Assembly: GCA_963924565.1 (NCBI GenBank)
Contig: OZ004610.1
Location: 248,001 to 312,000, forward strand
DNA from: Ascidiella aspersa
Taxonomy: Eukaryota
Length of the DNA stretch: 64,000 nt
Direction of reading: 5' to 3'
This document shows, piece by piece, positions 5,250 through 46,900 of the stretch (the stretch's first letter is position 1; each line of letters begins with the position of its first letter). The notes beneath the pieces are model-generated. The model saw nothing but the letters and a program-made list of their open reading frames with translations. It did not search any database and was not told the DNA's origin. The position numbers and the translations under genes are program-made.

Positions 5250-5439
5250 TTTCGGCAGCAGGTACCAACTGACCTCACCAGGGTTAATAAGTACACGGCA
5301 ATGAGTTAGCAAGCTTATACTACGAAGTATAAAATTAAGCTGCAATAGAGCAACAGGGATGACTGGATACATTAGGATCCTAAGTATTAACCTTTTAATT
5401 GTTAACCCTGATGAGGTCAGCTGGTATCTGCTGCCGAAA
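5250..5439. repeat. 38-bp inverted repeat (5250-5287 / 5402-5439), each arm a Penelope-type minimal hammerhead-like motif
   Basis: The arms match at 35/38 nt. The + arm reads CTGATGA-ggtcagc...gctgcc-GAAA. The - arm reads CTGGTGA...GAAACGTC. A third family member lies at about 59176-59213. Confidence 0.7.
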
Positions 5440-5518
5440 TTACTCAATTTACACCAAAATGATTTCTATCAACAGATGTTGTCTGGCGAGCAAACATCTC
5501 CACAAGAACAAGCAGATT

Positions 5519-8500
5519 TCAGTTGTTCCCGTAGTTTTGAGTCCCAGAGTTGGTGAAACTTCCAGGTCCGTAATTCTGACCTCCTTGGTTGTAAGTCCCT
5601 TTTAGTCCCAAAATAAAGAAATCTTGGTCATTTTACGTCATAGTGGTAGTTGTTACCTCACGAATAGTGGTTATGGTTACGTCACAAGTAATCGTTGTTA
5701 CGTCACAGTGGTAGTCGATTGGTCATTAGTAGTTTTGTTTCCAGTAAGATAGAGTTATGAGTTTTTCGTAAGAAAATTTTAAAACATACTCGGTTTTTCA
5801 GGTTGTTAAAAACGTAACAAAATACCAAGTGCGACAAGAATTACTTTAAATCAACTGAACAAATTTATAAAAGTGTACTGGCTTTCACAAAATATCCTGA
5901 AAACATTTTACAAGAAAGTATCACAAAAACACTACACTTTTATACAGAATAGTTGGCGTGAAAAAAAAAAACATTAAACGGAATATTTTTCATACTTTCT
6001 TCGACGCCAGGTAGGCTTATAGTGGAAACTGTAGCGTCTACTCTTTAAAAAGTACTTTTTTTTACTTACTTGGATTGTTAGTTGTTACATTGTCCCTTCC
6101 GGCAATACTGGCGCCACTAAAATCTAAAATTGGAAATATGACAAATTAAATAATTAGCCTTTCATAAAACAGGCTTACACATGTTTAGCCATAATATAGT
6201 TTATAGTGTGATCAATTATAAAGCTAAAAGTATTGTTTGAATCAATGTGATATCCCTACCCATAACCACCTAAAAATATGCACATTAATACTTACTTGCT
6301 CCATGTCCTTGAATGGAAATTCCACCTTGCTGACCTGCGCACATATAACACAAAGTTTTAAAAAAATCATGTTTAATCATAGTGTTTTTAAAAACTTATT
6401 ATTTTTGGCCCAATTTGCTGATTCATTTGTGAGGCTAATACAACCAATAACGTATATAAAACATAGTAATCACTATTTTTTCAAAATTAGTACTGGGATT
6501 ATATTAAATTACGGAAAACTTGTGGATGATCCATATATTCTGATACCACTGTTATGTAGAACTTTATTAAGGTAAAAGTGTTCAAACTATTAAAACGTAT
6601 TGGTTAATCTGTGCTTGCTGTTGTACACTTCATACATAAATGTACAAAACGGTTTGTTGATATTTAGGACAAAGCAAAAAATACTCAAGGTGTGGAATTA
6701 CGATAACACAAAATGTTTTGTTAAAAAAAAAATGACTGATGGAGTGATAGTTATAGAAATAAAATCCCAAATAAGTAATATGCATTTTTAAAGGTTGAAA
6801 ACTATTTTAACACACATAGCAAAAAGACTTATGTTTCAAAACTTTTTTGGTGTTTACAGCTGTATCAAAACAAAGATTTTAAATACATTTTGGTTGTAAC
6901 TTTATATTAATCTAGAAAGTAGCTGGCAATGTTTAGCAACCAATTGTAAAATTTTGACAAGTAGTGACAATTTTTTTCGTCTTTTTTTAGTTGACCTGAT
7001 AAAACATGGTAGTTTAAAAGCTTGTCAAGATTTTAATACATTTTGTTGTTAAATATTGCCACATGATTTCCAGATTTATAATTAGACCGGGGGTTCTCAA
7101 ACAGAGCCTTGGCGGTAGGTGAACAAGTTTAGGGGTATATGAAGGCAAGTTTATTTGAAAACAACAATTTTTTCTTGAATTGAATTAATCTTTTACATTT
7201 TTAGGACTAAAAACAGTAGATTTCTTTGATATTTTTATTTAGTTATGTAACTTTATGAAATCAGCTCAAAAAGTTAATGCTAACCCTTGCCCATAAAAAC
7301 CAAATACATTTTTTCAGGGTCTGTGTTAACAAAAATGTTAAGAACCACTAAATTAAACAAATATGGTTACTGGCAAAGATTTATCTTAAAAATTATCACA
7401 CTCAATAATGTCCACTTACCAGCGTTGGTGACCTGGTTATTGTGGTTGGTTTCATATCTAATGTCTCCACCAGCCATTGTGGCGTTATCTGAGTGAAATA
7501 AAACAACTTTAAGACAGGTCGGCTAAGTTTTTAAAATAAGGAGCATAAAGGCAAAAAAACACAAATTAAATGGCGTATTTTAACCCACAAAGTAATTGGA
7601 TGCATTCAGTTTTTACAAAACTTTTTGCCAAATAAAGAAGAAAAGAAATAAATAATTTAGCGAATAGTAAGAGTGACATTGAATAGTTATAATTTTGTTT
7701 TTATTTTAAAAAATTCAAACGAAATGCAACAAAAATAAATTATGAAAAATATCTATAAAAATGTAGAACTTGTGTAGTAATTAGGCATAATAGAATATTA
7801 CAATATTTTTTTAATAAGAATACATTTAAAAGTTAATTTAATTTTTTTTGCCAAACAGCAAAGCAAATTAATGAAAACATAATGATTTTAGTTTTGGTTT
7901 TACTCCAAAATTATCAACAAAACATGAAAAAGGGAAATTGAAAAATGTAGTTTTACCTCCGGCTTGCATTGAAATTCCTCCGCTTTGACCAATGTTCACG
8001 TTGTGTGTTTTCGGGGCTGCAGCTGCCGAACCAACTAAACAAAAACACAAGCTGTTGAGTTAAGGTGTTGATAATTATTATTCAATGCCAATGCAACTTT
8101 CAACAAAGAACAAATTTTTACCACAGCACCTAATGTACATATTCAAGTGGCAAGCTTAGATTAATATCTGTCATTGTAGCTTTTGCAGTGAATGTAGCTA
8201 ATCACAATTACTCGGTAAAGCCTCAAAATGACAATTGGTTAAAATGTTAACTACTTTTATTACAATGTGCACATGTTCACGAACTGTTTTACGATTATTT
8301 TCTGTTTAGTAAAGAGTATGTTTTAGTTAATCCCCCTATAAATAGAAGTTAAATATTACAATAAATCATACTAGGGCCACATTCTAAATTCAAACTCTGT
8401 TCTAAAATATCTTACCAGTTAACTTTGAATATCCCTCCCTAGGCCTGATAAAATACCAGCTTTAATTGATTGTTATAAATTTAAAGTTACCTTGCTAAAG

Positions 8501-11283
8501 CAACTTTACAGCTAGCGAGCCGGAGCAATTGGGTTTGGGTTTGATGGCTTCAAAGCTGGAGCCCAGCCCTTATAAACTCACATTTTGATTGTTTGTTATA
8601 AACCAAAGTTGTTGCATAAATGAAAATAATGCTTTTACACATTAAATCACAATGTTTTAATGCTTGGGCAGTTTTCTTCTTTGTTCTAAATATTAGGATT
8701 ACCTTGCATTGAAGTGATGGTGAAGTCCTTGATATGACCGAGGAGCTCCTGGTTTTGTTCGGCGAGTTTCCTCACTTGTTCCTGAAGGGATTCGACGAGG
8801 GTCGCGGATCGGACGCTATCAACAACTCGATCCAGTTTTCCCTGGGTGGCAAACTCAGCAGTGAATGAAATCGCTTCTTCAACCTTTACAAAGTCGTAAG
8901 CCTTAATTCCACTTTTGTACAAAGAATGACACAACGCGGGCAGAGAACCAAAGTCGAGGAAAGATTCGAGGTCAAAGTTTGCAGCGGCGATTATATCTGT
9001 TGAGAGCGGACATTCTTTGCCGCCAAGCGTAACACAATAGGAGCCACCAGCATTTTTAAGAGGGGCAGCGTCGTCAAACGAACCTTTTATTGCAAAATCT
9101 TCTTTAACTACCATCGCAAACTTGTCTTGTACTTCAAAATGGTGTGAGTTGCTGCAAAAATAAAATGTTTTAAGAAATTGTTTGAGTTTTTAGTTTGAAA
9201 TGATTTAAACATCAAGCCCGTACAGAAGTAGGTAACATTCAGTAAACATTCTGCTAAGTTTACATAAAAAGATCTTGAAATAAAAACGCAGCTATTTAAT
9301 AAAGGCCTGTGTTTGTTTTATTTTTTATTGTTCTTGGTCTTATAGAGCTGAAACCGATAACAAAGCCAATTGTTCAAGATTATTTTGTGATTATGGCCTT
9401 AACAATAGGATAAATGTTATTTCCTTTATTTCTGAAACTTTCACAAACAAGCAAAATTATCTATCTGATTTTCTGTTAAAGTTTTAAATTTTAGAGTTCT
9501 AACTAGGTTAATGTAAACAAAAATGAAGGCGGTGGTCTAGAATCTTACCACAGTTCTAAAATCAAGGCACAGAATTTGAGTTAGGGTGCGGGTTAGCGTT
9601 TGGGTTAAGGTGGGTCAAGTATTATTATATTCTTTGTTTAATAATAATACTTGACCCACCTTAACCCAAACGCTAACCCGCAACCTAACCCAAATGATGT
9701 TTCGTTGTGGTAGGATTCTAGACCAGCGCCCAATAATTAAATCAACACACAGTATGTGGATTAGGGTGCCAGTTAGCGTTTGGATTTGGGTGGGTCAAGT
9801 ATTAGTTTTAAATAAAGAATATTATAATACTTCACCCACCCACACCCAAACGCTAACTCGCACCCTAACTCAAATTCTGTGCCGTGATTTCATAACTGTG
9901 GTAGGATTCTAGACCAGCGCCAAAATGGGTCCTATAACATTTTCATGCTAACGATGGCCAATGACACATTTTGATATATTTTTTTTAATTTTATTCGAAA
10001 AAAGGATTTTATTGGAACTCAGACTATCATAAAAACCTGCCTGACCCCGATATCGAACTACGAAATTCGCACTACTGTAGCTGAATGTGCAACATTTTAA
10101 TATAATTTATGGCGCTGGTCTAGAATCCTACCACAATTATTCAATCAACGCACAATATTTGAGTTAGGGTGCGAGTTAGCGTTTGGGTGTGGGTCAAGTA
10201 TTATTATATTCATTATTTATTAATAATACCCTAATCCAAATAATGTGCGTTGTGGTACGATTCTAGACCAGCGCCCAATTTATTGCTAAACCAGTGGACA
10301 GTAATTCGAAAAGTTTGATACACAAATTTCCGTCTAACTGTAACCAACACTTATAAATGCAGAAAACAACTCGAGGCCCCTTTGTTGCAATTTGAAATCG
10401 CAGTACCCAGGGATTTTTGTAGGTAATTCCCCTAAAAAAGTTTACCATGTTTGCAGTTTATCACGTGACTTATTCTAAATATATGTTTTTCAAACAATAA
10501 CAAACTGCAAAGTCCTAAACTTGAGTAATTTTTAAAGTAATGGTATACGATACAAAACGAAGACGTTTCTATGGTAAATCAGCAAAACTGATCAAATTAA
10601 AAGGTACAAACAAATTCGGAGATGGCGCAATATTTGTTTGACGTCAGTTTATTTGAACTGCTTAAGTTGCCTATTAACAAGAAAACGGCTCCTTTTAGCA
10701 AGATTTTGTGACTTTTTCCCACTAAAGTTAACTTATTTAAACGTGAATTGAAATATAAAGTTAGGATTTAAGGTTATTTGCAAACCGTGTGCGGTCAAGC
10801 ATATCTAGTCAAGTGAGAGCTTTAACGAATTGTTTTGTGAAATTTTATTAACTTTTAATTTTTATTTTTGTAAAAGATTAAAGAAACGTTAGCAAGAAAT
10901 CACTACTGATCATTGAACCCTAAGAAAGTAGCAATTAGAACATCTAGAGATGGCCTATGATTTGAACTACAAACCTTTGTACTTATTTTATGAATTTTTA
11001 CGCGCTAAACGTTGCTTAACTTTAAACAAAATACTGTTTTTTTATCAATTTGCTAAACTTAAACGATATCACTGATTGTTTCAATTTGAACAAAAACGGC
11101 CATGTTTTGTTTAGCGTTTTCGCAGAAATGAACTGTTCTAAGGGTGATTTAAAAAAAAGCAATTATATATTTTAAAAAAGAACTGGAATATAAATTGTTC
11201 TAAGAATTTTATGCCGTTCAAATTATTATTTGTTAAAAATATTCTTTAGGTGCGGATATTTCGGTTTTAATTACTTACTTCAT
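5519..11283 (-). CDS. Uncharacterised ~257-aa protein: TRADD-N-like segment + coiled coil + C-terminal RHIM/amyloid-like G/N/Q-rich motifs. Exons 11283-11279, 9151-8703, 8034-7957, 7488-7420, 6334-6296, 6123-6070, 5598-5519
   Basis: All junctions are GT-AG and in frame (774 nt including stop). Product: MNNSHHFEVQDKFAMVVKEDF...VEEAISFTAEFATQGKLDRVVDSVRSATLVESLQEQVRKLAEQNQELLGHIKDFTITSMQ|VGSAAAAPKTHNVNIGQSGGISMQAG|DNATMAGGDIRYETNHNNQVTNA|GQQGGISIQGHGA|NFSGASIAGRDNVTTNNP|RTYNQGGQNYGPGSFTNSGTQNYGNN*. Domain labels come from motif resemblance only. The first and last exons are the least certain. Confidence 0.7.
9528..9921. mobile_element. Compound palindromic MITE pair with degenerate TTAGGG-like internal repeats
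   Basis: TIR GGCG(C/G)TGGTCTAGAATC(C/T)TACCAC ... GTGGTAGGATTCTAGACCAGCGCC. 9528-9731 is a near-perfect hairpin. 9732-9921 is an inverted partial copy ending in the same TIR. Confidence 0.8.
10111..10275. mobile_element. MITE of the same family (internally deleted)
   Basis: Both TIRs are present (ggcgctggtctagaatcctaccac ... gtggtacgattctagaccagcgcc). Confidence 0.8.
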
Positions 11284-13055
11284 GATACAGATTTCAACGA
11301 TTATCTTATATTTAAATTAAACGAACACTAAAAATCCAGGTTTTGTTTAAGGAAGCAGGAAATTTATTTTAGTCACAAAGTTACATCTAAACATGACGTC
11401 ACAAAGAAGTAACTTTAGAAACACCGCGTAGTTTGTTTAATTCTAGGGTGGAAAGGTGTTTTAATACAAAGTTACAAAAAGATAATGTCAATTCTAGTGA
11501 AGCGAAAAAACGCCTTTTATTGTTGAAACCTTCCTACCTTAAACTTTTAACAAACGAATTATTTTTTGACGTCACGGCATAACGCAACTTTATGACGTCA
11601 TCATATCCGAGCCTGCTAATAAATAATTAGAAAATAATCCACACACATTATATTGAATTACACCATACATCGAGCGTTATGCATCAACATGAACTAACAA
11701 TGATGGTTGCACAAAGAAATACTTTTCCAAGTAAATTACAGACAGACTTTCTGCCAATAACTTGTTGTACAAGCCTACATAACAAGCATAAACCAATGCA
11801 TCCAGCAAGCAACACAATATTTGTCAACAGTAGGCTACAAGCTTGTAGTCTCAACATTTGTTTTTTTTACGTATATAATTTCTCATTCCAAACCGACGTT
11901 TAGATTAAGAATTTTATCTAACTGACAATGTTATTTGTTCAAATGCCCATTTAGGCCGGCTTAACTTTACAACCTTAATAGAGTTCCCAAGCTATTATCA
12001 GGACATAGGAGCAATTCACAATTAGTTAGAATAAGAATTAGCCGCATTTCGCCCTAATTTATTGAATGAGAAAACTAGAATTAAAGACAACTTTGCTTCA
12101 GAAATCTAACCTTACTTTTCACCTTCACAGAGCTCTCAAGCTTTTACTTCCTGTTCAACGCAAGCCATACAAGAATGTCAGGTAACATACCTGGAGGGGA
12201 ATACCCGGGTAAACAATGGTAGCACATTGTGCGCAAACAAAGCAGTTGTAGCTTAACTGCGCGGAATTATGTACAATACTCGTTTGTTCGACTTGTGCTT
12301 TTGAAGTTTTGACTTTGGTGAGACATTTTAAAAGACCGCAATTACTTTATCTGTGTATGTTAAATTATCATGACTGCAGTTGTAGAAGCTATGTTTGGCA
12401 GAGTGTTTGATAAACTTTACAGGCAGTTTCGGTTCCTCAAAAAGACCCTAAAATTACTAAGTTTGTGAACCGACGGCTGGTTCTGTTGAAGTCGCACTGA
12501 CGAACTGTGAAGGCACACGTATTAATCTTGGGCTGTTTCTAAGGTCTAGGGTTCTACACAGTCTTATGATCCCAATCTTTTCTTGCTTAATTCGAATTCC
12601 TTAGTATATCTAATGCCTCAACGAAGCCAAAATTTCATTTGTTACGTTTTACGCATCGCTACATGATAAAGCTACACAATCACGACATGCAGTACAAGCG
12701 CACACTTGTAGTTCACTTCTTTCTATTCACGCTTATTATTATTTGGGCAATAAAAGTAACTTTGCTCAGCCGCGGGCAGAAGTGGGAATTCCAAAGTTAC
12801 CCAGTAAAAATAACTTTAGGCAAAGTAACGTATACATTTGTTTTATACCTATACGACGCCCATATACAAAACTTTATTCTAAGGAAAAGGGATTTTTACG
12901 CCCAGCGTTCAGAGAATTTGTAAAACACGAATATTATTTTTGGTTTAATAGGGTGTTTATTTTTACATACTTGTTGCGGCTTCTTAATTTCTCAGCGGCG
13001 AACAAAGCCAACCATAAAAAAACTGCTTGCAACCATAATTTATCGACACAAATGC

Positions 13056-14983: not shown

Positions 14984-16804
14984 ATTTATGGCTATTTTTT
15001 TTTAAGTTCAATTTATTCAAAAAATATAGACCAGTCTTAGTCTTGTAGCATAGATTTTTTTTCGTAATAATATTGTGCCTGAAAATTGTTGTCTGGGTAG
15101 GTTTTGGTTGATATTATAGTCCTCTGTAAAGCACAACTCTGCTGGGATTTTCTAAAGCCTGAATGAACCTGAAACTTTTATCGATTTGGGAGGTGTGACT
15201 GCGCTCTACCGCAACATAGCGGATAATTACAAAAATAAATACATTTAGTGAGGTTTTGAGGAAATAGATTTAAGTGGCCGGTATAAGTGATGCAGTTTGA
15301 ATATAAATTCCTTAACATTGGTAAACATATTGCTCATTGAATGTTAGTTGGTCACCCAATAACTAAAACAGGACATTTACAAACATATGTAAAAAAATAC
15401 GTAGACACAAAAACTTACAGACGGATCTAACAATTAGACAGAAAGCATACAAACAAACATACAAACAACCTAGGCAGTCACAATGCAAATACTGCGTGCA
15501 AATCAGTGTTTGTGGTAAATATCGCACAACTATGTGAATTGGCTTAGTATGTTTCAACAACAAAATCTTGCCGCCCAACAGAATACATATAGTGAGATAT
15601 TGAAAGTTCTAAATTTGTTTAATAGCTTTAGAAACGCACCGCTTCCAACAAAAACGCCAGCAAATTTCGTAAAAGTTATAATTTTTTCCTTGCAGTTTTT
15701 GAGAGAATTGATGCCGTTTTGCATGGAGTGGTACTGGCCAGCGATAACGACACACAGAGGATAGTAGGCTCACACATAATGCCTTCGGGAAGGTTACCGA
15801 AATCAGTCAGCTTCGCCAGGAACTTGCAGTGACCAGGCAAAATTCACCGCATTAGAATCTCCCGGTTTGCAACTTTTCCAAATACTTTAAATATTTCTCG
15901 GTTTCCTTCGCTCGCGCGCTTTGCATTGTTGTGCAATCGATGGAAGGAAATGGCGGAACATCGAGCAATATTCAACACCAGGTTGGCAGCGCTTTCAATA
16001 ATGCACTTATTATTGCGAAACAATAAGCGTCGCGCGCTGAAGCACTCGGAAGCCAGAATACTTCCCATCAGCTCAGCTCATGCATTTCTTTCTATTTGCT
16101 CTGAGCCCAGCGATACCTGGGGGGCGGTTGCGGGAGTCTAAAGGAGGGTGGGGGGGTATTACCTAAATAGTGGCTTTCTTATGAACAATTTGCGGTTTGA
16201 ATTTCATATACATGGTATTGTGTAATCTAACAGATGATTATTTAGAGTTTTGTTTTCAATAGTTGTTTGCTCTGAGCTGCGATACCAGGTTGGGGCCGGT
16301 GAAGGTATACTGGCTGAGTTTAAGTCCCAGTCAAGCCATAACTCGAGCAAGTCAATTTCAAGTCCTAGTAAAAAATAAAACGTTAACCTATTGGAATTGG
16401 TAAAACCGTCCGATTATTACAAGCAACAAATAAACTGAAAATATAAAAACGTAACATATGCAAGCAAATAATTTATGTGCAAAAAATCGGTCAACACAGC
16501 TCAAATTCTTGTAGCAAATTTGTAGCAAAGGGGCATCCATATTGTAGTAAATATCATGCAATTCCTAAACAAGACGGCCCTATTTTAAACTTTATTTACT
16601 TTACGCAATAACATTATCACGCCAAGGACTGCAACGAATGGTTGCTATACAGGCTTAACTCAGGGGGAGCACTGGTTACCCACTCCTTCAGTTTAGCGAA
16701 CGTGCCCTGGCTAGCAGAGCTTACTTCCAAAGTGTGCAAGTCGCGAGCCTCAGACATTTAGGGAAGTTGCAGCTAAATAAAACCGGGACAATTACAAGTT
16801 GAAG

Positions 16805-19800
16805 ATGTCGCCTGATCCCTATCTTAACGCGAGCCTGGATTATGAGCTTGTAGATGACATGCTGGAACAGATGCGGGAATTGTGTGAACAGGAGGGTGGA
16901 GGGAGTGATCGGCTTGTGGAGTCGATAGCCCTGTACGTGCTGGTGGCTGCTGGTTTGGTCGGGAATGCACTGGTTGTGTTTGTAGTAGCGATGCTGCATG
17001 ATTATACAAGGAGCAGGCCTGGATGGTGAGTAAATGTTGTTTGTTGGTAAGAACTATTTCTAAGGGTTCTGTTTTATTTTGACTTGATTTTAAAATGTTG
17101 CTCACTTTGACTCGGTTGATAAATGCGAGATGTTCGCTAATAATTTGACTTATGTCGATTTAATATTTTTTTATTTTTTCACTTAGCTCTTTATGGCCAT
17201 AATCGACTTGGAATATATTCATTGCCAATCTTACTTATGAAAGAAATTCTATTTGATTTCTATATTAACCATTAAGCAAAATCAGCACGTGCTTAGGGCA
17301 CTAAGGGAAGGGGGCACCACAGAAATTTCCAAGCCCAATATTCAACGGTGTCTAAGTGTTTCATGAAATAATTAGAGTTGGTCAGACGGCTCAGACCTCA
17401 ATAGTGGCCCGGCTGAAATAAATGTTTGCCTATTTTTCCTTCTCAAGTATAATCTTAAACCTGTCTATATTTTCGATGGATAATATCTTGTGTGGTTTAT
17501 TGTGTTTATGTTTTCAATGGCACATATAGGGCAAAAGTCTTAAATGCCTGGGGCCTCCAAAGGTATGATCGGGCCTTGACTGTAACCACTGACGGTCTTG
17601 CCTATCACATGTACCGTTGTTGTTGAATTTCTATGGCGAGACTGAGAAAAAAATTAAACAACACTCTTTTAAGGGCCTAAATGTACGTGCAAATTCCTCC
17701 AACGCTCATTTAAAATATAGTCTGCTCAATAACTGCAGCAGATAATTTTAGTTTTACAAACTGGGATGAAATAGTTGCGTTTTGTAAGTTCGTAGCGGTC
17801 AGCAGCTTTAATCAACGTGTGATGTTGTGTATAATATTCATCTTTGTATCTTGTTGGGCTTAACATATTGCGTCGCGCAGCGCTAGATCACCTTTCCACA
17901 AACAACCTGCTTTTTAAACGATGAATTTTCTCGTTTAGGGTCTACAATAATGTTTTAATAACCAGAGCCCGCTTTCACTGTGCCGTGAGGTTTTGAGAAG
18001 CCTACAAGAAGAAAAAAAATAGTGCGCATTTCAGTCTTGCAAGACTGCATTCCTATACATGAGTTTATTTAAAAACAAAATTCTCAGCACACATTTATGG
18101 ACGTCCGATAACATTGTATCGAAGCCGATATCCGATACTGAGTGGTAGTATTGGTAGAGATCCGATACTAGGGTGGTGTCTATTTAATAAGTAAATCTTA
18201 TTTGATTTGCAAAAAATAAGTCTATTCGTTCAGCTTTAACATTTTTACTCAAAATACTATAAAAGTACTTGTCTCCCCCCCAAAAAAAATTGATGTTTTC
18301 CTAAGTAAATACAAAAATTTGTGGCTCTCCGCGCGAATCTAATTATTTCTCTAGGATTTCTAAGCCTAAATTTGTTAAAACTCGTCTCAGTGCAGCCTCG
18401 AAAATAAAGAGTTTTTTTTTTGGCGCGAATCGATAACTTCTTTGCAATATTGCTTTTGTATAAAAGTAATATTTATTAAACATAAAATCTTTAACAAAGC
18501 AATCAATCTGGGTGACGTTCTTAAGGTTACTTCCTTATGACATCACGCCTCTAAGAAACTTTGTAACGTCACGTCTGAAAAGTTTTTATGCCCCAGAAGG
18601 AAATTCCTGGATCCGCGCCGGATCAAACTTTGTGTGCGTGGTATCCGCTTATTTTCAAGTTACTTCCCCGAATATTTCAAGCCAGTGAAAACAACCCGAG
18701 CCCGACTCCGGCTCTACAGCCTGTATTCCGCCCTTTTAAGTACAAAACTACAATAAGAAGTAACTACAATAAGATAAATATTTAGATCCACTCATAGAGG
18801 TGGAATACAATGCATCAACACCATTTTGCAATTTCATCAGAAATTTGATACTGCGCATGCGCACGTCGGGCTTCCCAAGTAGTTACTTAAACTTGACTCC
18901 GCAGTTTTACTTTCAGCTTCCCTTGAATAAACTTTTATCTTTCCAGGATGTTAATTCAGATGCTGGTCGCCAACATCCTGTTCATTGTCTGCGTCATAAT
19001 CAGGCTTGTCGCCGACTCATCCGACAAATGGACGGCAGGCGTGACGTCATGCAAGATCCACACATTCCTTACTACGTCATCGCTTAGCAACGCCGTCGTC
19101 CTGCTTATGGTATGACATCACTGAAATGTTTTGCGACATTTAATTATTTAACTGCACTTCCAAGGCACAAACAATTCAAGCATTAAACTTAGTATGTGTT
19201 TTTAACAGAACCTTGCAATCCAACAGAACACAAAAAGTTTTAAAAGCTTGAGAAGCGAACCGCTTCGGACAACAACCAGTCAGCAAATAACTTTTAATAT
19301 AAATATGGGAAACACTGCCCTAACCCTAAGTTCGGTCCAACCCAGTTCACGCAAACCTTTCAGTTACAAAAAAAGTTTACAAACCTTGTTCTATAGATAT
19401 ATTATGCGCAATTTAATATATAAACTGTTGCTACCAGGAATAATAATAATAATCAAAACCAGCTCCTTTGGTAATTGAAGTTGTTAAACAATGTTTCGGC
19501 GACTTTTCAAATCGCCTTCGTCAGGGTGGAACATATTATATAATGATGTTTGGCGAAACGATTACAATATTCAGAAAAGGGCGCATCTTTATTAGATCCA
19601 AAACCATTTGCAAGAGGTTTCTAATTTAATATTATTATTATTACTTTGCTGTGTATTTTACTTTCCTTATAGGAACTGACGATGACAGTACAGGCGAAAT
19701 ATATATTCCTTTAAAATATGTCTGATCCCGTTTTTACTCGGGTTTTGAAACTTTGAATTTTACTATTTAACGTTTACAATTACAAGAGGAACTTTTTTTT

Positions 19801-26697: not shown

Positions 26698-29600
26698 TTA
26701 CTTTGGTTTGACTGTGGGGCTCGAAAGAACTGTGGGGGGCTCGGGGCTCACTTTAGGGGGCTTTGGAACCATTTCGGTAGCCTGGGCCTCCTTGGGGACC
26801 TGTTTGGGAACTTCGGGAACTTTAGGCACAACTTTTGGGGCCTGGGAAACATTAGGGGGTTGGGAAACAACAGTAGGGGGTTGGGAAACAACTTTAGGAG
26901 CCTGGGTAACTTTAGGGGATTGGGAAACAACTTTAGGGGGTTGGGTATCAATTTTAGCAGGCGTAGTAGGATTTTTATTGGTTTCCGGGGCAACCTTAGG
27001 GGTTAGGGGTGAAAATTTGGTTTTTTTTCCGTTCTTAGGGGTGCTTTCAACCCTGATGGTCGGAACCTTTTTAATTGACCCTTGACCTTTCGATTCTCCG
27101 CCAGGTGGAGCCACAGAGGCGCGAGGTATCGTTGTAGGGAGATTCCCCGACAAGACCTGACCTACTGGGGAAGGGGCCAGTGGTTTGAACCCGAATGACC
27201 CCGCATCGCTGGGCAAGATAAACTTGCTGTTGTTGTTGTTGTTAGTATTGCTGCTGTCTGTGTTATTGTTGCTGTCTGTTGTTGTTTCAGCTGAGGATAT
27301 TGACGCCATTGCCTCCTGTGGAAATTAAATTCCTGCTTTCAGACTTGGAAAACTAGATTTGTTTTAGCTTTTTCAATTAAATTAAATTAGAACTAAAATT
27401 ACCGAATTCCTGAAAAAACAGAATTTAAACGTGAATGCCATTTAATTAATTCACATTAATTTAGTTTAAATCGAAATTTATTCTTATAATAATGTGAATG
27501 GTAAATTTTGTGTTTTTATATATTTTAGCATAGTAGTTTTCAGAATGTAAAAATTACCAACAAGTCTTTTCGACCGATTGAAATTCGCATTTTTAGTAAA
27601 ATACGAAAAAGCTGCGTTTTTCTCTAATTTTTTGAGTCAGAAAACTAGAATTATTTAGTTTTCCAAGTCTTCCTCTATTATTACAAATGCAAAAATGAAG
27701 TCAAGACTAACAAAGAGAAGCTACAATAACTGTGCTGTTGCATGATATATTAAAAGAAGCTGTTCCGGAACTTAGTTAGTTTATCCAAAATTTGATGACG
27801 TCATCCTGCACAGGTTTCCGAAACATCGGAAAAAATCAATTAATACCGAAAGAACTTATTTTTAGCAAAGAGGAGGCAGCAAAGCGTTTTTATAAATATT
27901 TCTCTTTTATTTTAAAACCTTAATTCTATACTTCTAGCGATGATACACTAAGATTTCAATCTAAATCAAGTCCACCTACCTAAAACTAAAACAAGTCCAC
28001 CTACCTAAAACTAAAACAAGTCCACCTACCTAAAGGGTTCATGGACCCCTGTGAAGAACCCCAACTTTAACGACTAATATTGGTAAAAGGCTAAAAAGCG
28101 ACATAGAACTCCTGTTCGATTCATACTTTCCCAAACCAACTCAAACCGTCACCTTAGAGTCACTTGCATCAGCTGATGATTGAATCATGATCTGGTCGAG
28201 CTTGGCCTGGATCTTGTTGAAGCTGTCCTGCCCGTGGTAATCAATCGAACCGAACTGCCATCGCTGCAGGTCAGCAAGCGTCGATACGAGAACCCCCTCC
28301 TCCTAAACCGGGGGTCGGGGTTACTTGGGGTCAACAACAACTCTAATATGACAACGAACTCCTAAAACGGGACGGGGGTTACTTGGGGTCAACAACGAAC
28401 TCCTAAACCGGGATTGGAGTTACTTGGGGTCAACAACGAACTCCTAAACCGGGATTGGGGTTACGTGGGGTGAACAACGAACTCCTAAACCGGGATTGGG
28501 GTTACTTGGGGTCAACAACGAACTCCTAAACCGGGATTGGGGTTACTTGGGGTCAACAACGAACTCCTAAACCGGGATTGGGGTTACTTGGGGTGAACAA
28601 CGAACTCCTAAACCGGGATTGGGGTTACTTGGGGTCAACAACGAACTCCTAAACCGGGATTGGGGTTACTTGGGGTCAACAACGAACTACTAAACCGGGA
28701 TTGGGGTTACTTGGGGTCAACAACGAACTCCTAATACGGGACGCGGGTTACTTGGGGTCAACAACGAACTTCTAAATCGGGACGGGGGTTACTTGGGTCA
28801 ACAACGAACTTCTACACCAGGACGGGGGTTACTTGAGGTCAACAACGAACTTTTAAACCGGGATTGGGGTTACTTGGGGTGAACAACGAACTCCTAAACC
28901 GGGGGTCGGGGTTACTTGGGGTCAACAACCACCTACTAAACCGGGATTGGGGTCAACAACGAACTCCTAAACCGGGATTGGGGTTACTTGGGGTGAACAA
29001 CGAACTCCTAAACCGGGATTGGGGTTACTTGGGGTCAACAACGAACTCCTAAACCGGGATTGGGGTTACTTGGGGTCAACAACGAACTACTAAACCGGGA
29101 TTGGGGTTACTTGGGGTCAACAACGAACTCCTAATACGGGACGCGGGTTACTTGGGGTCAACAACGAACTTCTAAATCGGGACGGGGGTTACTTGGGGTC
29201 AACAACGAACTTCTACACCAGGACGGGGGTTACTTGAGGTCAACAACGAACTTTTAAACCGGGACGGGGGTTACTTGAGGTCAACAACGAACTTTTAAAC
29301 CGGGAAGGGGTTACTTGGGGTCAACAACGAAGTTCTAAACCGGGACGGGGGTTACTTGGGGTCAACAACGAAGTTCTAAACCGGGATGGGGGTTACTTGG
29401 GGTCAATAATGAATTTCTAAACCGGGATGGGGGTTACTTGGGGTCAACAAACTGCTAGACGTTGGTGGTTTATTGTTCGATCAAGTTTTTGAAGTAGCAT
29501 AAAATGTTGCGTTTACGTAATTTATTTGAGCGACGTCAGTGATATTGGACCAAAAAAAAGATATATTTTTTTAGCGTTTTGCTGAAGATTGTATGAATGG

Positions 29601-40948: not shown

Positions 40949-43900
40949 TCATACAAGCGTACCAGCCTGGCTGTCGTTGGTGTCCGTCCACAAGAGGTCC
41001 TCAGCGGACGCGGAAAACTGTCGCGTGTCGCGCTGTGTTGTGTCGCGAGGCCTCGTGTCGCGATGTCGCGTGTCGCGGGGGTACCTGGCGCCGGGCTTGG
41101 AACCGGCGATTGTTTGGTAGTTGGGGGGTTGCTGGTGGTATTCCATGTTGTAGCGGGGGTGTGGCACCTCCACAAAAGGGGCGTGGCTCAAATGCTGCTG
41201 ATTGTCAGCGGACAATCGAAATGCTTCCGACTTTGATCTGCGAGAATTTAAAAGTAAACAAAATGCTTTTAAAGCTTTATGCGAGTTTGAATGCAGGTTT
41301 TGTTTTACTGGAGTTTGGAAAGGCGCTTAAGTTCCTTGGTAAGTTCATTTTTACAACAACAAACTATATGTTAAGGCGAATAAACTATCATCTACTGGTG
41401 TATTTGATTTAAAACAGACAACAAAGTTGTTTTAACATAAGGTATTGAAGGCAAAAGCTTTCGTATTAACATTCATTAAAATAAAAAAGTGAGTATTTGT
41501 AAAAACATAATATTTGTTTTCCAGAACTAATTGTAAAGCAATTGGACATTTTAATCGAAATAAAGTAACTTTTTTAAATCAACTTTTAAAACAAATACAA
41601 GCAAACCTATCTTTAAATGTTTAACGCATGTTAGTTGCAACAATATATTATGATGTTTCTACAATGCAGTAGTTTAGAACAAGCAAAGCCGTGCGAATCG
41701 ACAAAAACAAACATTCAATGAACAAACATGATTTCACTCACATGAATTACGGAATTTAATGAGACTTTGTGAGCCAATATGAAACTATTTTTATTGAGGT
41801 TTTTACAAGATGTTTAGAATGTTGTATTTAGATGTTTTTAATACAGTTAGTTTTTTTAATCCAACAAATACGTTAAATCGGACAAAACATGGCTTCCATT
41901 CATTAAACATTTGTGACAACCAGTCGATCATGCTTGTCAACTTTAGCGCACAGTAACAAGCATGGCACGTTGTATACCATTTGCTTGTCTTCGTCCCAGC
42001 GCAGCTTTAGACGTAAAAGTGGATTTAAGGGTTGTTGATAATAGTGTGATGAATAAAGGGCCCGTTTATGTTTAAAATAAGTACAACAAATAAAATCCAG
42101 TTAAAAAATATCAACTTGAAACAAACATCAAAAAGTTAAACCAAGTGAAACATCAAGAAATATTTGATGTTCCTGTATAAAGTCGGCGAAGAATAAATAT
42201 ATGGTAAAAAGACACCACAGAAAATTGACACGACATGGAATGGACAATAATGGAGATTTAAAATCTTTTCGGAGCGAAAATGTTTAGTTCCAAGTTACAG
42301 ACGCATGTTGGAACCCCTTAAATAGCTAAAATATTGAGGTATTAGGAACCAGTTTAACGCTTTATACATATTTATATAATTATTTTATTTGTTTTTCTTA
42401 TTTGTTAGGTTTGAAGCAATTACCTCGGTGGCATCGTTAAGTGTTTCATTTTGAATAGTTTAATTTAAAAAAGCAAGAGACAAAGAAAGTTTGTTATGAA
42501 AGGGTGAATAGAAAGGAAATATGCTGAGTAAGATTCAAAGCAAGAAGAAAATAACTTGCCATTCAAATGCCAGAACTAGAAATAAGCGATAAAAAAATCA
42601 ATACTTTATAAATTTTGAGGGGTCACCATTTGGCGGGTTCTTATATATATTTGTTAACAGCCAAAGGAAATGTGTTTAGTAAAATAAACCAATTTTCTGA
42701 GTAACAAAGATAAAAGTGCTGAGCAAGGGTCAGTAGAAAGCAAAAAAATGCTGAGTAGTAAAACATTTAGCCACGAAAGGTGATTTCTGCTGAGTAAAGG
42801 TTCATGCCGGGGTCACCAGTGTTGCCAGGCAACAAGGGAGGTACCTGTGGTGAGCGGATAGGCTGGGCGAAAGGAATCCCCTGGAACGTTGGGTGAATGG
42901 GTTCTTCTGGGGGGTTCCAGTGGGGGTGGTTGGAGCCGAAGCAGGGTTTTGCTCGTACAAGTAATGCTCGATCAGCGAGTTTCTGGGGAATACCCTTAGT
43001 TGAGAACCACTGCTTTAAGTGCTTGAGGCAAAACCGAATTTTTATTCAGCGAAAGTTGCTTCCCCACAACACGCGTTGTTGGGCGTATGGAGAAGTTGCA
43101 TGTATAATTGTATACACATGGTATCCACGCACACGCCTGGCAACAGAGCTTTTAATTTAAACAGCCGCACCGCAATATGCAACACTGGTTCCAACCTTTT
43201 TGTTTTTGCGGACCCCTTTTCAGTTTTCAAAATCTTTCGCCAATTTTGCTGATGGATGTTTTAGATTTGTTTAATAAAAATATCGTCTGATTCGAAACAA
43301 GAATCTTTTTTTACATTTTATTGTCATTTGGAGATTCCTTACATTCGAAAATGCTTTCGAATAACTGGTATTGTGACGTAATATACGAGCGCTAGAACGA
43401 CTTGTGACGTCACGCTGTGAAACACAGCCATTGTTTACGTCACATATATATTTTGGGAAAATACATTAAAAGATTTGCCTAAAAACCAACACAATATTTA
43501 ATTTAACTAAAAAAGAAAATATATTTGTTAAACAATGTTTTAATTCCTTTTGTGATTCTCCAACATTATCAACTTCAACATTATTTTTAAGAAAGTGTTT
43601 TTATAATTTTTTGTTATTCAAGGATTTGTTAAATCTGCTTTTCCCTGCACGATGACGTCACCACATGCACGGTTACCATGGTTACCTGCGCGACTTGCGA
43701 GCGGCAGCGACATCTAGTGTGAGACGCGCTCTCGCGGGGGAATTCCCCAAAGCAGGAGCGGGTGCCAACTTGCGCCTGGACGCCCTGGGTAAAGTCCCCG
43801 ACGTGAAACCCGGGGATTCACCGAAAGTGGGGGAATCGAATCTTCGAGAAGGGGAATTCCCGAGGTTGGGTGAAGGGGATTTCCCCATTGTAGGTGAGTC

Positions 43901-46900
43901 GGCGAACCTTTGAGAGAAAGGGTCGACCATCTTGGGTGAAGGGGAATTCCCGAATGTAGGGGTTTGCGAGTCACGTGACTTGCGAGGGAAACTCCCTGAT
44001 TTTGGCGACGGGGATTTCCTCAAGGTGGGAGAGTCCCTGAGTATCGATGTTGGGGATTTCCGAACCTTAAGCTTCAGGTTCGGCGACAAGTTGCTCGATT
44101 TAGGTTTGTTCCTCCCCAAAGTGTTGCTGTGTGACGTCACAGTGGGTGGGGAGGGTGACTGGCGGGCTCTGACGTCACGCCTCCCCAGAGTTGCGGCTTT
44201 TGCTTCTTTCCTCGATTTACTCGCTGCTCGCTTCACTCTGGGTGGAGGCATCGGTGTTACGTCATCACTTCGTGACGTAGTGCGACCTCGTGATCGCCGG
44301 CAATCAGTGACGTCTCCATGGTCGATTGTGACGAATGGAACAAGGGAGGGTTTGATGCGGCTCTTGAAGCTCGGGGTGTGAACAATCACAGGGTTTGTGA
44401 CGTCATTGTGATGACGTGACGCGCTGAGCAGGTCGTCGGCGCTCTGATGACGGTGCCCTGACGTCAAATTCTTGCTAGTGATGACGTCATCTTTCGCAGG
44501 GGAAGTCCCGAAGAACGAGCTGCCTTCCGCTAGGGGGGGATCGAGGGGAGTGTTGGGGGCGCTTTTGGTGACCTTGAAGGCGCTGACCGTGTGACCTTCA
44601 GGACTCTGGGTGAGTTGCTGGAGAACCACCGTGTTAGGGGAACTCCCCTCCGTCCCAACGAAGTCGCTCGATCTGGGGAAGGTCGATTGTTACGTCACTA
44701 TATCGTGCTTTGTCACCAGGAAGTTGTAGATTCGTGCTAAAGATTGAAACCTCGAGAAACATGCAAAGCACAGGAAGCTTTGGGAAGAAAGTTGTGTTAT
44801 TTGGAATCCATGCTGAGGTTTGGAGAAAGATTTCACCTGAACATTCTGGAGCTGCATTCGACCTTTTGTTATTTGAAGGTCACATATTTGTCAGTTGTTA
44901 GTATTCAGTGTAGGATCATGCTTTTGTTCTTCTTGTGTATGTTTTTTGTTAATAGTTTCGATTTATTATTATTGTTTAATTCTTCCAGAAGATTTGTGTT
45001 TAGTTGTTTTAGTTACGTTGGTTAGAATTGCATTGATGTTATCATCAACATGCTCAAGTAGTAAAGGTTAATAAAACTTGTTAATCACAAGAGCTTCGAA
45101 AATATTATGAAGAATAAAAGCCACCAAAGATAATAGTTATTATGATTGCAATTATCAACAAAAATCTCAAAGCAAGGATGAATTTGTCAATAAATAAACA
45201 AATAAACATAATTCAACAAAACTGGAAAATCTTGTTTGTTGAATTAAATGAAACTCACACAAAACTGTCAAAAAAGTGCAAACAACCACCAAAGACCCAA
45301 AAGAACATAAAAAAGTCAAAAAACCCAACTTACCCAGGGTCAGGGTTAAGGGGCGTCCCCCCGTTGCTAGGCAACAGCCTCGCGTCATCTGAATTCCATC
45401 GTTGTGGCGCCGCTAGCCTCGGAGCAGTCTGGGTCGTCTGCTTGGCGGGAACTGAGGATTCAAAATAGTCACGTGACGGTGGCGCGGTGCACTGTGGGTG
45501 GTGCAAGTAATGCTGGAGCAGAATTCGTCGTTTCGCGTCCGGAACAACCGGAATGGCGGGAGTAACAATGGATTGGTGGTTGCCATAGTGACCGATGGTG
45601 CTATACGGGCGATATGCTGCCTCCAGTGGTGGTTGTTGTTGTTGTGTTACTATGGCGACACAATTAGTTTGTTGTTAGGGAGGGTTAGTCGTGCGCGGCG
45701 AACCGTGACGGTTATGGTCATGCGATGAAAATAAATTTGTAAAACAACAAAAGTTTAAATTTTAAATATTTCTGTCTTAGTGGTTTATTACTATATAATA
45801 ATAATGATCATGCGATGAGTTAATGAAATCGCATTTTATGAAAAAACAAATTACATTAAAACTTTAATGTATAGTTTAGGTACAATATGAATTAAATGAA
45901 AATTCGCACAATCTGTAATGTAGCTTGAAAATGAAAAGCCAAAAAGGTCGAGCAGATCGACATCACCTTGATTAAGACGTTTCGATACGAACTTGTATAA
46001 ATTAATTGTTGATAGAATCTTTATCTTTATCAAGATCATGTCGATTTACTCGACCTTTTTGCCTTTGACATTCATTATATCAATGTATAGTTTGGTTCAA
46101 TAATAATACTAATGATCATCATGCGACGAATTTAACATATTCAAAGTAAAGTTACAAATAGCAAGATAATAAGTTTGTTAAAATCATGAGCGATGATGTG
46201 AAACAATTCAAACATGCAATGATAACGTTATTCACATGACAAGAGCTATGGTGGTTATTTCGTGGTTGCTATTAATAATAAACTAAGTGGGAAATAAACA
46301 TATGATTTGAACCCGCTAAAATGTGGCCTGGGTGTGGTTTATTTCAACTCCTTTGCATAACTTGGCATTGTAACCAAATGCACCAAAATCTAATAGGGAT
46401 TAAGAGCAAAAAAACAGGGGTTCTAAACCTAAAGAGGGTAATTTGGCAAATATTTTGGTATATTTTTGACAATATAAGACTTTGAAATAGTCTTTCCTTT
46501 CCGCACTTCGATTTGAATGAATAGTTGAATTAGTGTTGCTGATCCCAGGTTACAATTATACTTTAAAAACGAGGTTAATTGAAATCTGACAAGTTTTTTT
46601 CGAAATGTAATGCTAAAAGGTTAAGAACCTCTGGTACACAACTGCCCATTGTAAGAAGTGGGCCTCTTATGTCGAGTAAAACTTGTTTAACAAACCTGAT
46701 CTTTGATGTTGAAGCTTCGGTTGCTTCTGGGTCTGGTAAAGCAGGAAGGGCGCGTTGTTGGTTGTGGGCTGGAGGGGGCCAGGGGTCGTTGGGGGGTTCG
46801 GGGGGAGGGGAGGGGGCTTGTGCTGGAATATACTGGCTCGTGATGACGTGGAGTCGGAGTGGTGCAACCTGGGGTGGAAAAAGTGGGTTTTGGGTGGGTT

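Follow-up and report, generated by a model that had tools for sequence, protein, structure and literature searches.

TRADD-N domains are adaptor modules that have been expanded in marine invertebrates, and they constitute a superfamily defined by an RRM-like fold with kinked helices and by a conserved tiny residue plus a Ser in the turn between strands β2 and β3, and a DED combined with a TRADD-N domain is the architecture by which the DEDD2 clade is recognised (Kaur et al. 2021, PMC8195603). Only two TRADD-N proteins were counted in Ciona in that survey. Other adaptors rely on short motifs. The RIP homotypic interaction motif (RHIM) of RIPK1, RIPK3, TRIF and ZBP1, like the cRHIM of Drosophila IMD and PGRP proteins, lies in a disordered region, sometimes in two or three copies; amphioxus RHIMs take positions that usually belong to death-fold domains, and tunicates appear to lack RHIMs (Kajava et al., PMC4262963). 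The present work concerns a gene of the tunicate Ascidiella aspersa, located in a stretch of 64,000 nucleotides (the window; assembly GCA_963924565.1, contig OZ004610.1, forward-strand positions 248,001 to 312,000, corresponding to C4:248001-312000 in the genome of 308 Mb and 75 contigs that was searched). This gene encodes a protein of 243 amino acids in which a divergent, probably TRADD-N-like head is followed by a tail of short G/N/Q-rich motifs. The whole is tentatively read as an adaptor whose motif-cassette tail serves homotypic self-association.

The window gene lies on the minus strand and comprises six exons, with a coding sequence of 732 nt (Table 1). Exon 1 derives from an open reading frame (ORF) of 142 codons at 8686-9114 and is followed by five micro-exons, of which the four internal ones are all multiples of three in length, and all introns are GT–AG and of phase 1. 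The window was compared with three public runs, namely transcript-like contigs (X3), raw RNA-seq of which about 6% of the run was read (X5) and DNA (X2). Depth in X3 is about 84-257 over the exons and 0-9 over the introns, and its contigs contain the joints 8034/8703, 7957/7484-7488, 6332-6334/7418-7420, 6123/6296 and 5597-5598/6069-6070, that is, all five predicted introns, with ends CT..AC on the plus strand and thus GT..AG on the minus strand. The last intron, leading into exon 6, is also spanned by four raw reads of X5. The DNA run shows a flat depth of about 140 and none of the five joints, which therefore reflect splicing and not a retrocopy. The window gene is, therefore, a real, spliced and transcribed six-exon gene. 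The original prediction of a hidden micro-exon gene is thereby borne out, and translation exon by exon reproduces the tail peptides that it quoted. Its proposed span of 5519-11283 holds for 5519-9114, while no coding sequence was found in 9115-11283. On the 5' side of the ATG, the transcript contig extends as untranslated sequence at least as far as 9519 and, further on, runs into a high-copy repeat. Very high-copy repeats occupy 9500-10300, 5300-5499 and 6900-7099 of the window, with depths of up to 5e5 in a DNA run, and a presence/absence difference of 402 bp at 9519/9922 is found both in the transcript-like and in the DNA runs, so that it represents an insertion or deletion rather than an intron.

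Table 1. Exons and tail motifs of the window gene (window coordinates) and the Ciona locus used for comparison.
Feature	Position	Strand	Remarks
5' untranslated region	9115..9519	-	joined to exon 1 without a break in X3 (transcript contig 13)
Exon 1	8703..9114	-	start codon at 9114; entire head, residues 1-137; phase-1 donor caag/gtaatc; from ORF
Exon 2 (78 nt)	7957..8034	-	Ala-rich linker and first copy of motif 1
Motif 1, first copy	about 7958-8002	-	N-V-N-I-G-Q-S-G-G-I-S-M-Q-A-G
Exon 3 (69 nt)	7420..7488	-	second half of pseudo-repeat 1, D-N-A-T-M-A-G-G-D-I...; sole copy in the genome
Exon 4 (39 nt)	6296..6334	-	second copy of motif 1, Q-Q-G-G-I-S-I-Q-G-H-G
Exon 5 (54 nt)	6070..6123	-	second half of pseudo-repeat 2
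Exon 6 (80 nt)	5519..5598	-	motif 2, two N-x-G-x-Q-N-Y-G units; TGA stop at 5519-5521
Ciona intestinalis locus L065	AP043573.1:8247878-8270932		genes at 10001-13055 and 15392-19148

The head of the window protein (type A) was matched by no Pfam family over residues 1-137. Four tandem paralogues at C4:6.247-6.287 Mb share 44-47% identity with it, and more remote type A-like copies are located on C2 at 29.23 Mb and at 38.07-38.15 Mb. In the C2 heads at 38.07-38.15 Mb (L049 and L050), an intron interrupts the coding sequence precisely at the β2–β3 turn, between P-G and S/T, and the next exon ends in a copy of motif 1. A different head ORF of 175 residues (type B) was also found to precede the terminal tail exon (L020:4253-4792, plus strand), head and exon being joined on the basis of compatible phase-1 splice sites. 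Type B is present in at least 35 copies, mostly in one tandem array at C4:3.85-4.12 Mb. Most of these belong to a variant, B', which is 41% identical and is followed, at a distance of about 3 kb and in the same orientation, by a TPR-like ORF of 250-300 residues with sub-threshold TPR_12/SNAP matches (L062:5968-6879, minus strand); unlike B', four near-identical type B copies either have the G/N/Q terminal exon behind them or are solitary. An exhaustive phmmer search of the type A head against 1.84 billion representatives retrieved two uncharacterised proteins of Ciona intestinalis, besides repeat noise, while a word-indexed search with the single head ORF and with the type B alignment gave no match and a search of the ESM Atlas gave no usable lead.

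Structures were predicted for both heads. The AlphaFold (AF2) model of type A, built from an alignment of nine sequences, has a predicted local distance difference test score (pLDDT) of 92.5 and a predicted template modelling score of 0.87, and consists of β1, a hairpin insert, α1, β2, a turn, β3, a long broken α2 and β4 (strands at 3-11, 71-78, 81-88 and 133-136; helices at 57-67 and 91-128, the latter broken). The type B model (pLDDT 76) displays the same order of elements plus a C-terminal helix. Thus, both models adopt the β-α-β-β-α-β, two-layer α+β RRM-like sandwich of TRADD-N domains. When 350,542 PDB chains were searched with Foldseek, the TRADD N-domain 1f3v_A ranked first for type A (E 0.016, probability 0.99), and the probability for type B against this chain was 1.00. 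Realignment of the Foldseek list with VIA-align again placed 1f3v_A first for type A (Z 6.6, root-mean-square deviation (rmsd) 2.9 Å over 97 residues; next chain 5.2), and for type B it gave Z 10.4 (rmsd 3.0 Å over 119 residues), the next chain lying 3.7 units lower at 6.7. Moreover, five of nine type B heads show sub-threshold matches to PF20694 (TRADD-like_N; 15-17.6 bits, cut-off 23.7) that fall exactly on β2-GS-β3-α2, a family for which no match was found among type A heads, and hhalign aligns the same β2-β3-α2 segment between the two head families (E 2.7e-4, probability 41%). A G-S pair, the putative counterpart of the tiny residue and Ser of the superfamily (Ser67 in TRADD), occupies the β2–β3 turn in six of the nine type A and in all nine type B sequences.

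The relatives in Ciona suggest a death-pathway context for this head. A profile search with the head recovered three further Ciona homologues. In one Ciona protein (P0008), the head is preceded by a full-length DED match (PF01335, E 3e-6, short of the gathering score) and a caspase (Peptidase_C14) gene lies directly downstream, while another (P0007) has the same head and ends in a caspase fragment. This layout of DED, head and caspase may resemble the prodomain arrangement of caspase-8-like proteins. In A. aspersa, a tblastn search with the Ciona DED against the window and the fetched loci revealed no DED upstream of the window gene. Elsewhere in the genome, a weak DED match and a weak NCOA6_TRADD-N match occur 1.2 kb apart at C3:12912530-12914047 (minus strand), and this locus probably represents the ordinary DEDD/DEDD2 orthologue in the species. 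Caspase (Peptidase_C14) exons have undergone a large expansion in tandem at C6:31.1-32.7 Mb, and a weak type B-like match (C6:31379673, E 0.34) is found inside it.

The head of the window protein is, therefore, likely to be TRADD-N-like, because 1f3v_A is the top structural match of two independent models and because the sub-threshold PF20694 matches of type B, the DED and caspase context in Ciona and the G-S turn at family level point in the same direction. The original prediction had reached the same fold assignment from the sequence of a segment. The head family is a divergent tunicate clade of TRADD-N-like domains that curated models do not capture, and the count of two TRADD-N proteins in Ciona implies that this clade had not been recognised previously. 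Like the TRADD/DEDD2-clade proteins (PMC8195603), it combines an RRM-like head with lineage-specific tandem expansion in a marine invertebrate, the head being constant and the C-terminal parts variable, and its Ciona members include a DED ahead of the head. Open reading frames of a long terminal repeat retrotransposon (gag, reverse transcriptase and integrase; L022:255-4137, plus strand; C4:6257555-6261437) lie within the type A/B cluster, a situation reminiscent of the retrotransposons reported to accompany expanded TRADD-N genes. Unlike those proteins, the window protein has lost the G-S pair and carries a G/N/Q motif tail instead of a death-fold domain, and its family is missed by the curated TRADD_N and NCOA6_TRADD-N models and absent from the survey count.

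The tail comprises 106 residues, 43% of which are G, N or Q (20, 17 and 9, respectively), with three prolines and 7.5% charged residues. Two pseudo-repeats had been proposed in it, and these are evident at the level of exons, since exon 2 resembles exon 4 (QSGGISMQ and QQGGISIQ) and exon 3 resembles exon 5; an exon pair has, therefore, probably been duplicated. The terminal exon 6 is built of two N-x-G-x-Q-N-[YF]-G units (motif 2), which differ from motif 1 of exons 2 and 4. In the whole genome, motif 2 occurs at only 8 sites, all on C4, namely in the window, in four to five type A paralogues (6.25-6.29 Mb) and in three type B genes (3.982, 3.994 and 6.263 Mb), the last of which sits within the type A cluster. 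Protein identity between the window and its paralogues amounts to 70-79% in motif 2, compared with the 44-47% of the corresponding heads, and the alignment of exon 6 is confined to the coding part. In one type A paralogue (L011, region of C4:6254114-6254185), the motif-2 exon lacks a stop and continues as A-Q-Q-A-G-R-N-I-V... until it reaches a GT donor; the exon that encodes motif 2 may thus be an internal one there.

Motif 1 has a different distribution. It is 72% identical at C2:38102216, behind C2 heads that are only about 31% identical, and is also present in L050 (C2) and at C5:819260, giving at least four sites. Immediately 3' of the motif-1 exon on C5 there is a minisatellite with a repeat unit of 33 nt (L055:2117-2580, C5 about 819.9 kb). 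Each motif is thus better conserved than the head among paralogues. The genome search detected no motif 2 in the C2 and C5 motif-1 genes, and the tails of the C4 cluster paralogues, whose middle exons are splice-site predictions, are without motif 1. Both classes were found together in the window protein only, and the earlier claim that two motif classes meet in one protein agrees with this partition, motif 1 being common to the C2/C5 genes and motif 2 to the C4 genes.

The original prediction went further and aligned M-Q-A-G-D-N-A-T-M of the tail with RHIM cores. The RHIM is defined by [IV]Q[IVLC]G within about 18-22 residues (PF12721), and this tetrad is absent from the tail, which has M-Q-A-G and I-Q-G-H at the corresponding places. 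No RHIM, HET-s or other family was matched when each tail exon peptide was compared separately with Pfam (E<=10; the motif straddles the junction of exons 2 and 3), and a genome scan with the Pfam RHIM model yielded marginal matches elsewhere only, which are probably unrelated and repeat-borne. In addition, exon 3 of the X3 allele reads D-G-A-T-M in place of D-N-A-T-M, so that the N of GDN is G. The PP/BASS3 core, G-x-Q-x-G, does not fit either, as motif 2 (G-x-Q-N-[YF]-G) is one residue longer and motif 1 reads G-Q-S-G-G and S-M-Q-A-G. The search for an NLR, kinase, TIR or MLKL-like protein bearing either motif, which had been suggested as a source of partners, found none in the genome. RHIM membership consequently fails, because the core is absent, the exons scored singly give no Pfam match, the GDN residue is variable and no partner gene was found.

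In spite of this, the tail shares several features with motif-based signalling systems. As in RHIM adaptors, its motifs are short, repeated and rich in N, Q and G with a central Q, and they stand at the usual position of a death-fold domain, while differing from these adaptors in the lack of the core, of a Pfam match and of a kinase, TIR or Z-alpha partner. Fungal HET-S and HELLP and bacterial Bell–BASS proteins likewise couple a small globular head to a C-terminal motif of about 20-30 residues arranged as pseudo-repeats, with one motif common to clustered genes with different heads; however, the head of the window protein has an adaptor fold, in contrast to the pore-forming HeLo, HELL and Bell domains, no motif-bearing NLR was found, and the motifs are unrelated to the HRAM, PP, sigma and BASS signatures. 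Finally, G/N/Q/Y-rich units such as Q-G-G-Q-N-Y-G and the few charges recall prion-like low-complexity domains (LCDs) such as the Sup35 N repeats and the FUS low-complexity region, from which the tail differs in being short, discrete, strongly conserved, exon-modular and attached to an adaptor head of the death-pathway type. Amyloid signalling by the tail is, on these grounds, a plausible analogy: its discrete, pseudo-repeated motifs are C-terminal to an adaptor domain, where relatives hold death-fold domains, and are common to proteins with different heads in clustered genes.

On this basis, a mechanism can be proposed as the favoured, though tentative, reading of the protein, a transcribed and presumably cytosolic member of a tunicate-specific, locally expanded family. 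The head, a putative divergent TRADD-N-like α+β sandwich, would act as a protein–protein adaptor module that docks a sensor or an effector of a cell-death or immune pathway, a context suggested by the Ciona relatives in which it follows a DED and adjoins caspase sequence. The tail, as a cassette of conserved motifs distributed over phase-1 micro-exons, with motif 1 twice and motif 2 at the end, would replace the death-fold domain of TRADD or DEDD2 and may mediate homotypic, cross-β or prion-like self-association with proteins bearing the same motifs. Since both motif classes are found in the window protein alone, it could link the motif-1 proteins of C2 and C5 to the motif-2 proteins of C4.

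Several observations weigh against this adaptor reading, and some of them concern the head. The Z of 6.6 for type A is modest, as generic ferredoxin-like folds reach 5-5.7, and in a full VIA representative scan the best Z for type A was 5.7, with ACT, RAM and HMA-like folds at 4.5-5.7 and the nuclear magnetic resonance entry of TRADD-N at only 4.6. The window copy has E-A, not G-S, at the β2–β3 turn. Neither Pfam TRADD_N (PF09034) nor NCOA6_TRADD-N (PF13820) matched at the type A and type B loci, no curated Pfam threshold was reached by the heads, and TRADD was not recovered when hidden Markov models of the two head alignments were run against PDB sequences. Furthermore, no DED or caspase was found near the window gene or any type A or type B cluster. 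The structural scan and the missing Pfam thresholds would suit a generic ferredoxin-, ACT- or RRM-like domain unrelated to TRADD-N, for instance a binder of small ligands or nucleic acids with no role in death or immunity. This is nevertheless improbable, since TRADD-N is the top match of both head families with two aligners, type B stands at Z 10.4 versus 6.7 for the next chain, and the PF20694 matches, the G-S turn and the Ciona DED fusions with their caspase neighbour all speak for a closer relationship.

The remaining points against the adaptor reading concern the tail, which lacks a canonical RHIM or PP core and gives no Pfam RHIM match exon by exon. Motif 2 is G/N/Q/S/Y-rich and devoid of aliphatic residues, which brings it nearer to a yeast-prion or FUS-type low-complexity segment than to a RHIM, and every site of motifs 1 and 2 that was found follows a type A or type B head or belongs to a small exon, with no NLR, kinase, TIR, MLKL-like, receptor or executioner gene carrying either. 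The motif-2 exon and several hundred flanking bases are, moreover, 92-97% identical among the type A cluster genes and the type B genes, which indicates recent transfer of DNA by exon shuffling or gene conversion and not long-term selection. The main competing explanation accepts a TRADD-N-like head and regards the tail only as a disordered low-complexity linker or condensate region, similar to FUS or yeast prions, that neither templates amyloid nor transfers signals between proteins. The composition of motif 2, the absence of a core and of receptor or executioner partners and the allele that alters a motif-adjacent residue are in its favour, but the motifs are discrete, position-specific and each a pseudo-repeat, and among paralogues from three chromosomes they have diverged less than the folded head, whereas purely composition-driven LCDs usually drift in sequence; we therefore regard it as rather unlikely, though it is the most serious competitor. 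That the motifs are true, divergent homologues of RHIM, PP or BASS3, and hence the missing RHIM system of tunicates, is very improbable. M-Q-A-G-D-N-A-T-M can indeed be aligned with V-Q-V-G-D-N-N-Y-L of RIPK3, the Ciona tails hold a related segment, G-[VL]-N-I-V-Q-[GV]-V, and the replacement of death-fold domains by RHIMs in amphioxus, together with the reported lack of RHIMs in tunicates (PMC4262963), would leave room for such a system. However, the tetrad is replaced by MQAG and IQGH, there is no GxQxG, the Pfam RHIM model matches only marginally and elsewhere, with nothing on the tail exons scored singly, and the N of GDN is polymorphic.

The adaptor reading with a self-associating tail can be extended further, although the extension is unlikely as it stands. 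Tunicates might have evolved an amyloid-type signalling code of their own, with two new motif classes (the N-V-N-I-G-Q-S-G-G-I-S-M-Q type and the type with two N-x-G-x-Q-N-[YF]-G units) that micro-exon shuffling joined to TRADD-N-like heads of expanded families. As a two-code bridge, the window protein would then couple polymer networks that are otherwise separate, in a pathway of cell death, immunity or allorecognition.

Apart from this gene, two long low-complexity ORFs were noted on the minus strand of the window, namely a P/T/V/K-rich ORF of 203 residues at 26698-27309 and an S/P/R-rich ORF of 315 residues at 43682-44629.

The TRADD-N-like adaptors brought to light by the analysis form an unrecognised and highly divergent clade in tunicates; their prion-like motif cassettes are encoded by micro-exons, and exon-modular motifs stand in for the usual death-fold partner domain. 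Self-assembly coded by motifs is, thus, a concrete and testable hypothesis that arises from the window protein, and the system is tractable, given small proteins, discrete motifs and the natural occurrence of motif 1 only, motif 2 only and both, on two heads. If the tails do not polymerise, the family would still show cleanly how micro-exon cassettes evolve on an adaptor of the immune type. If they do, a new class of amyloid or prion-like signalling motif would be added to those of metazoans, in a lineage that is the sister group of vertebrates and is said to lack RHIMs.

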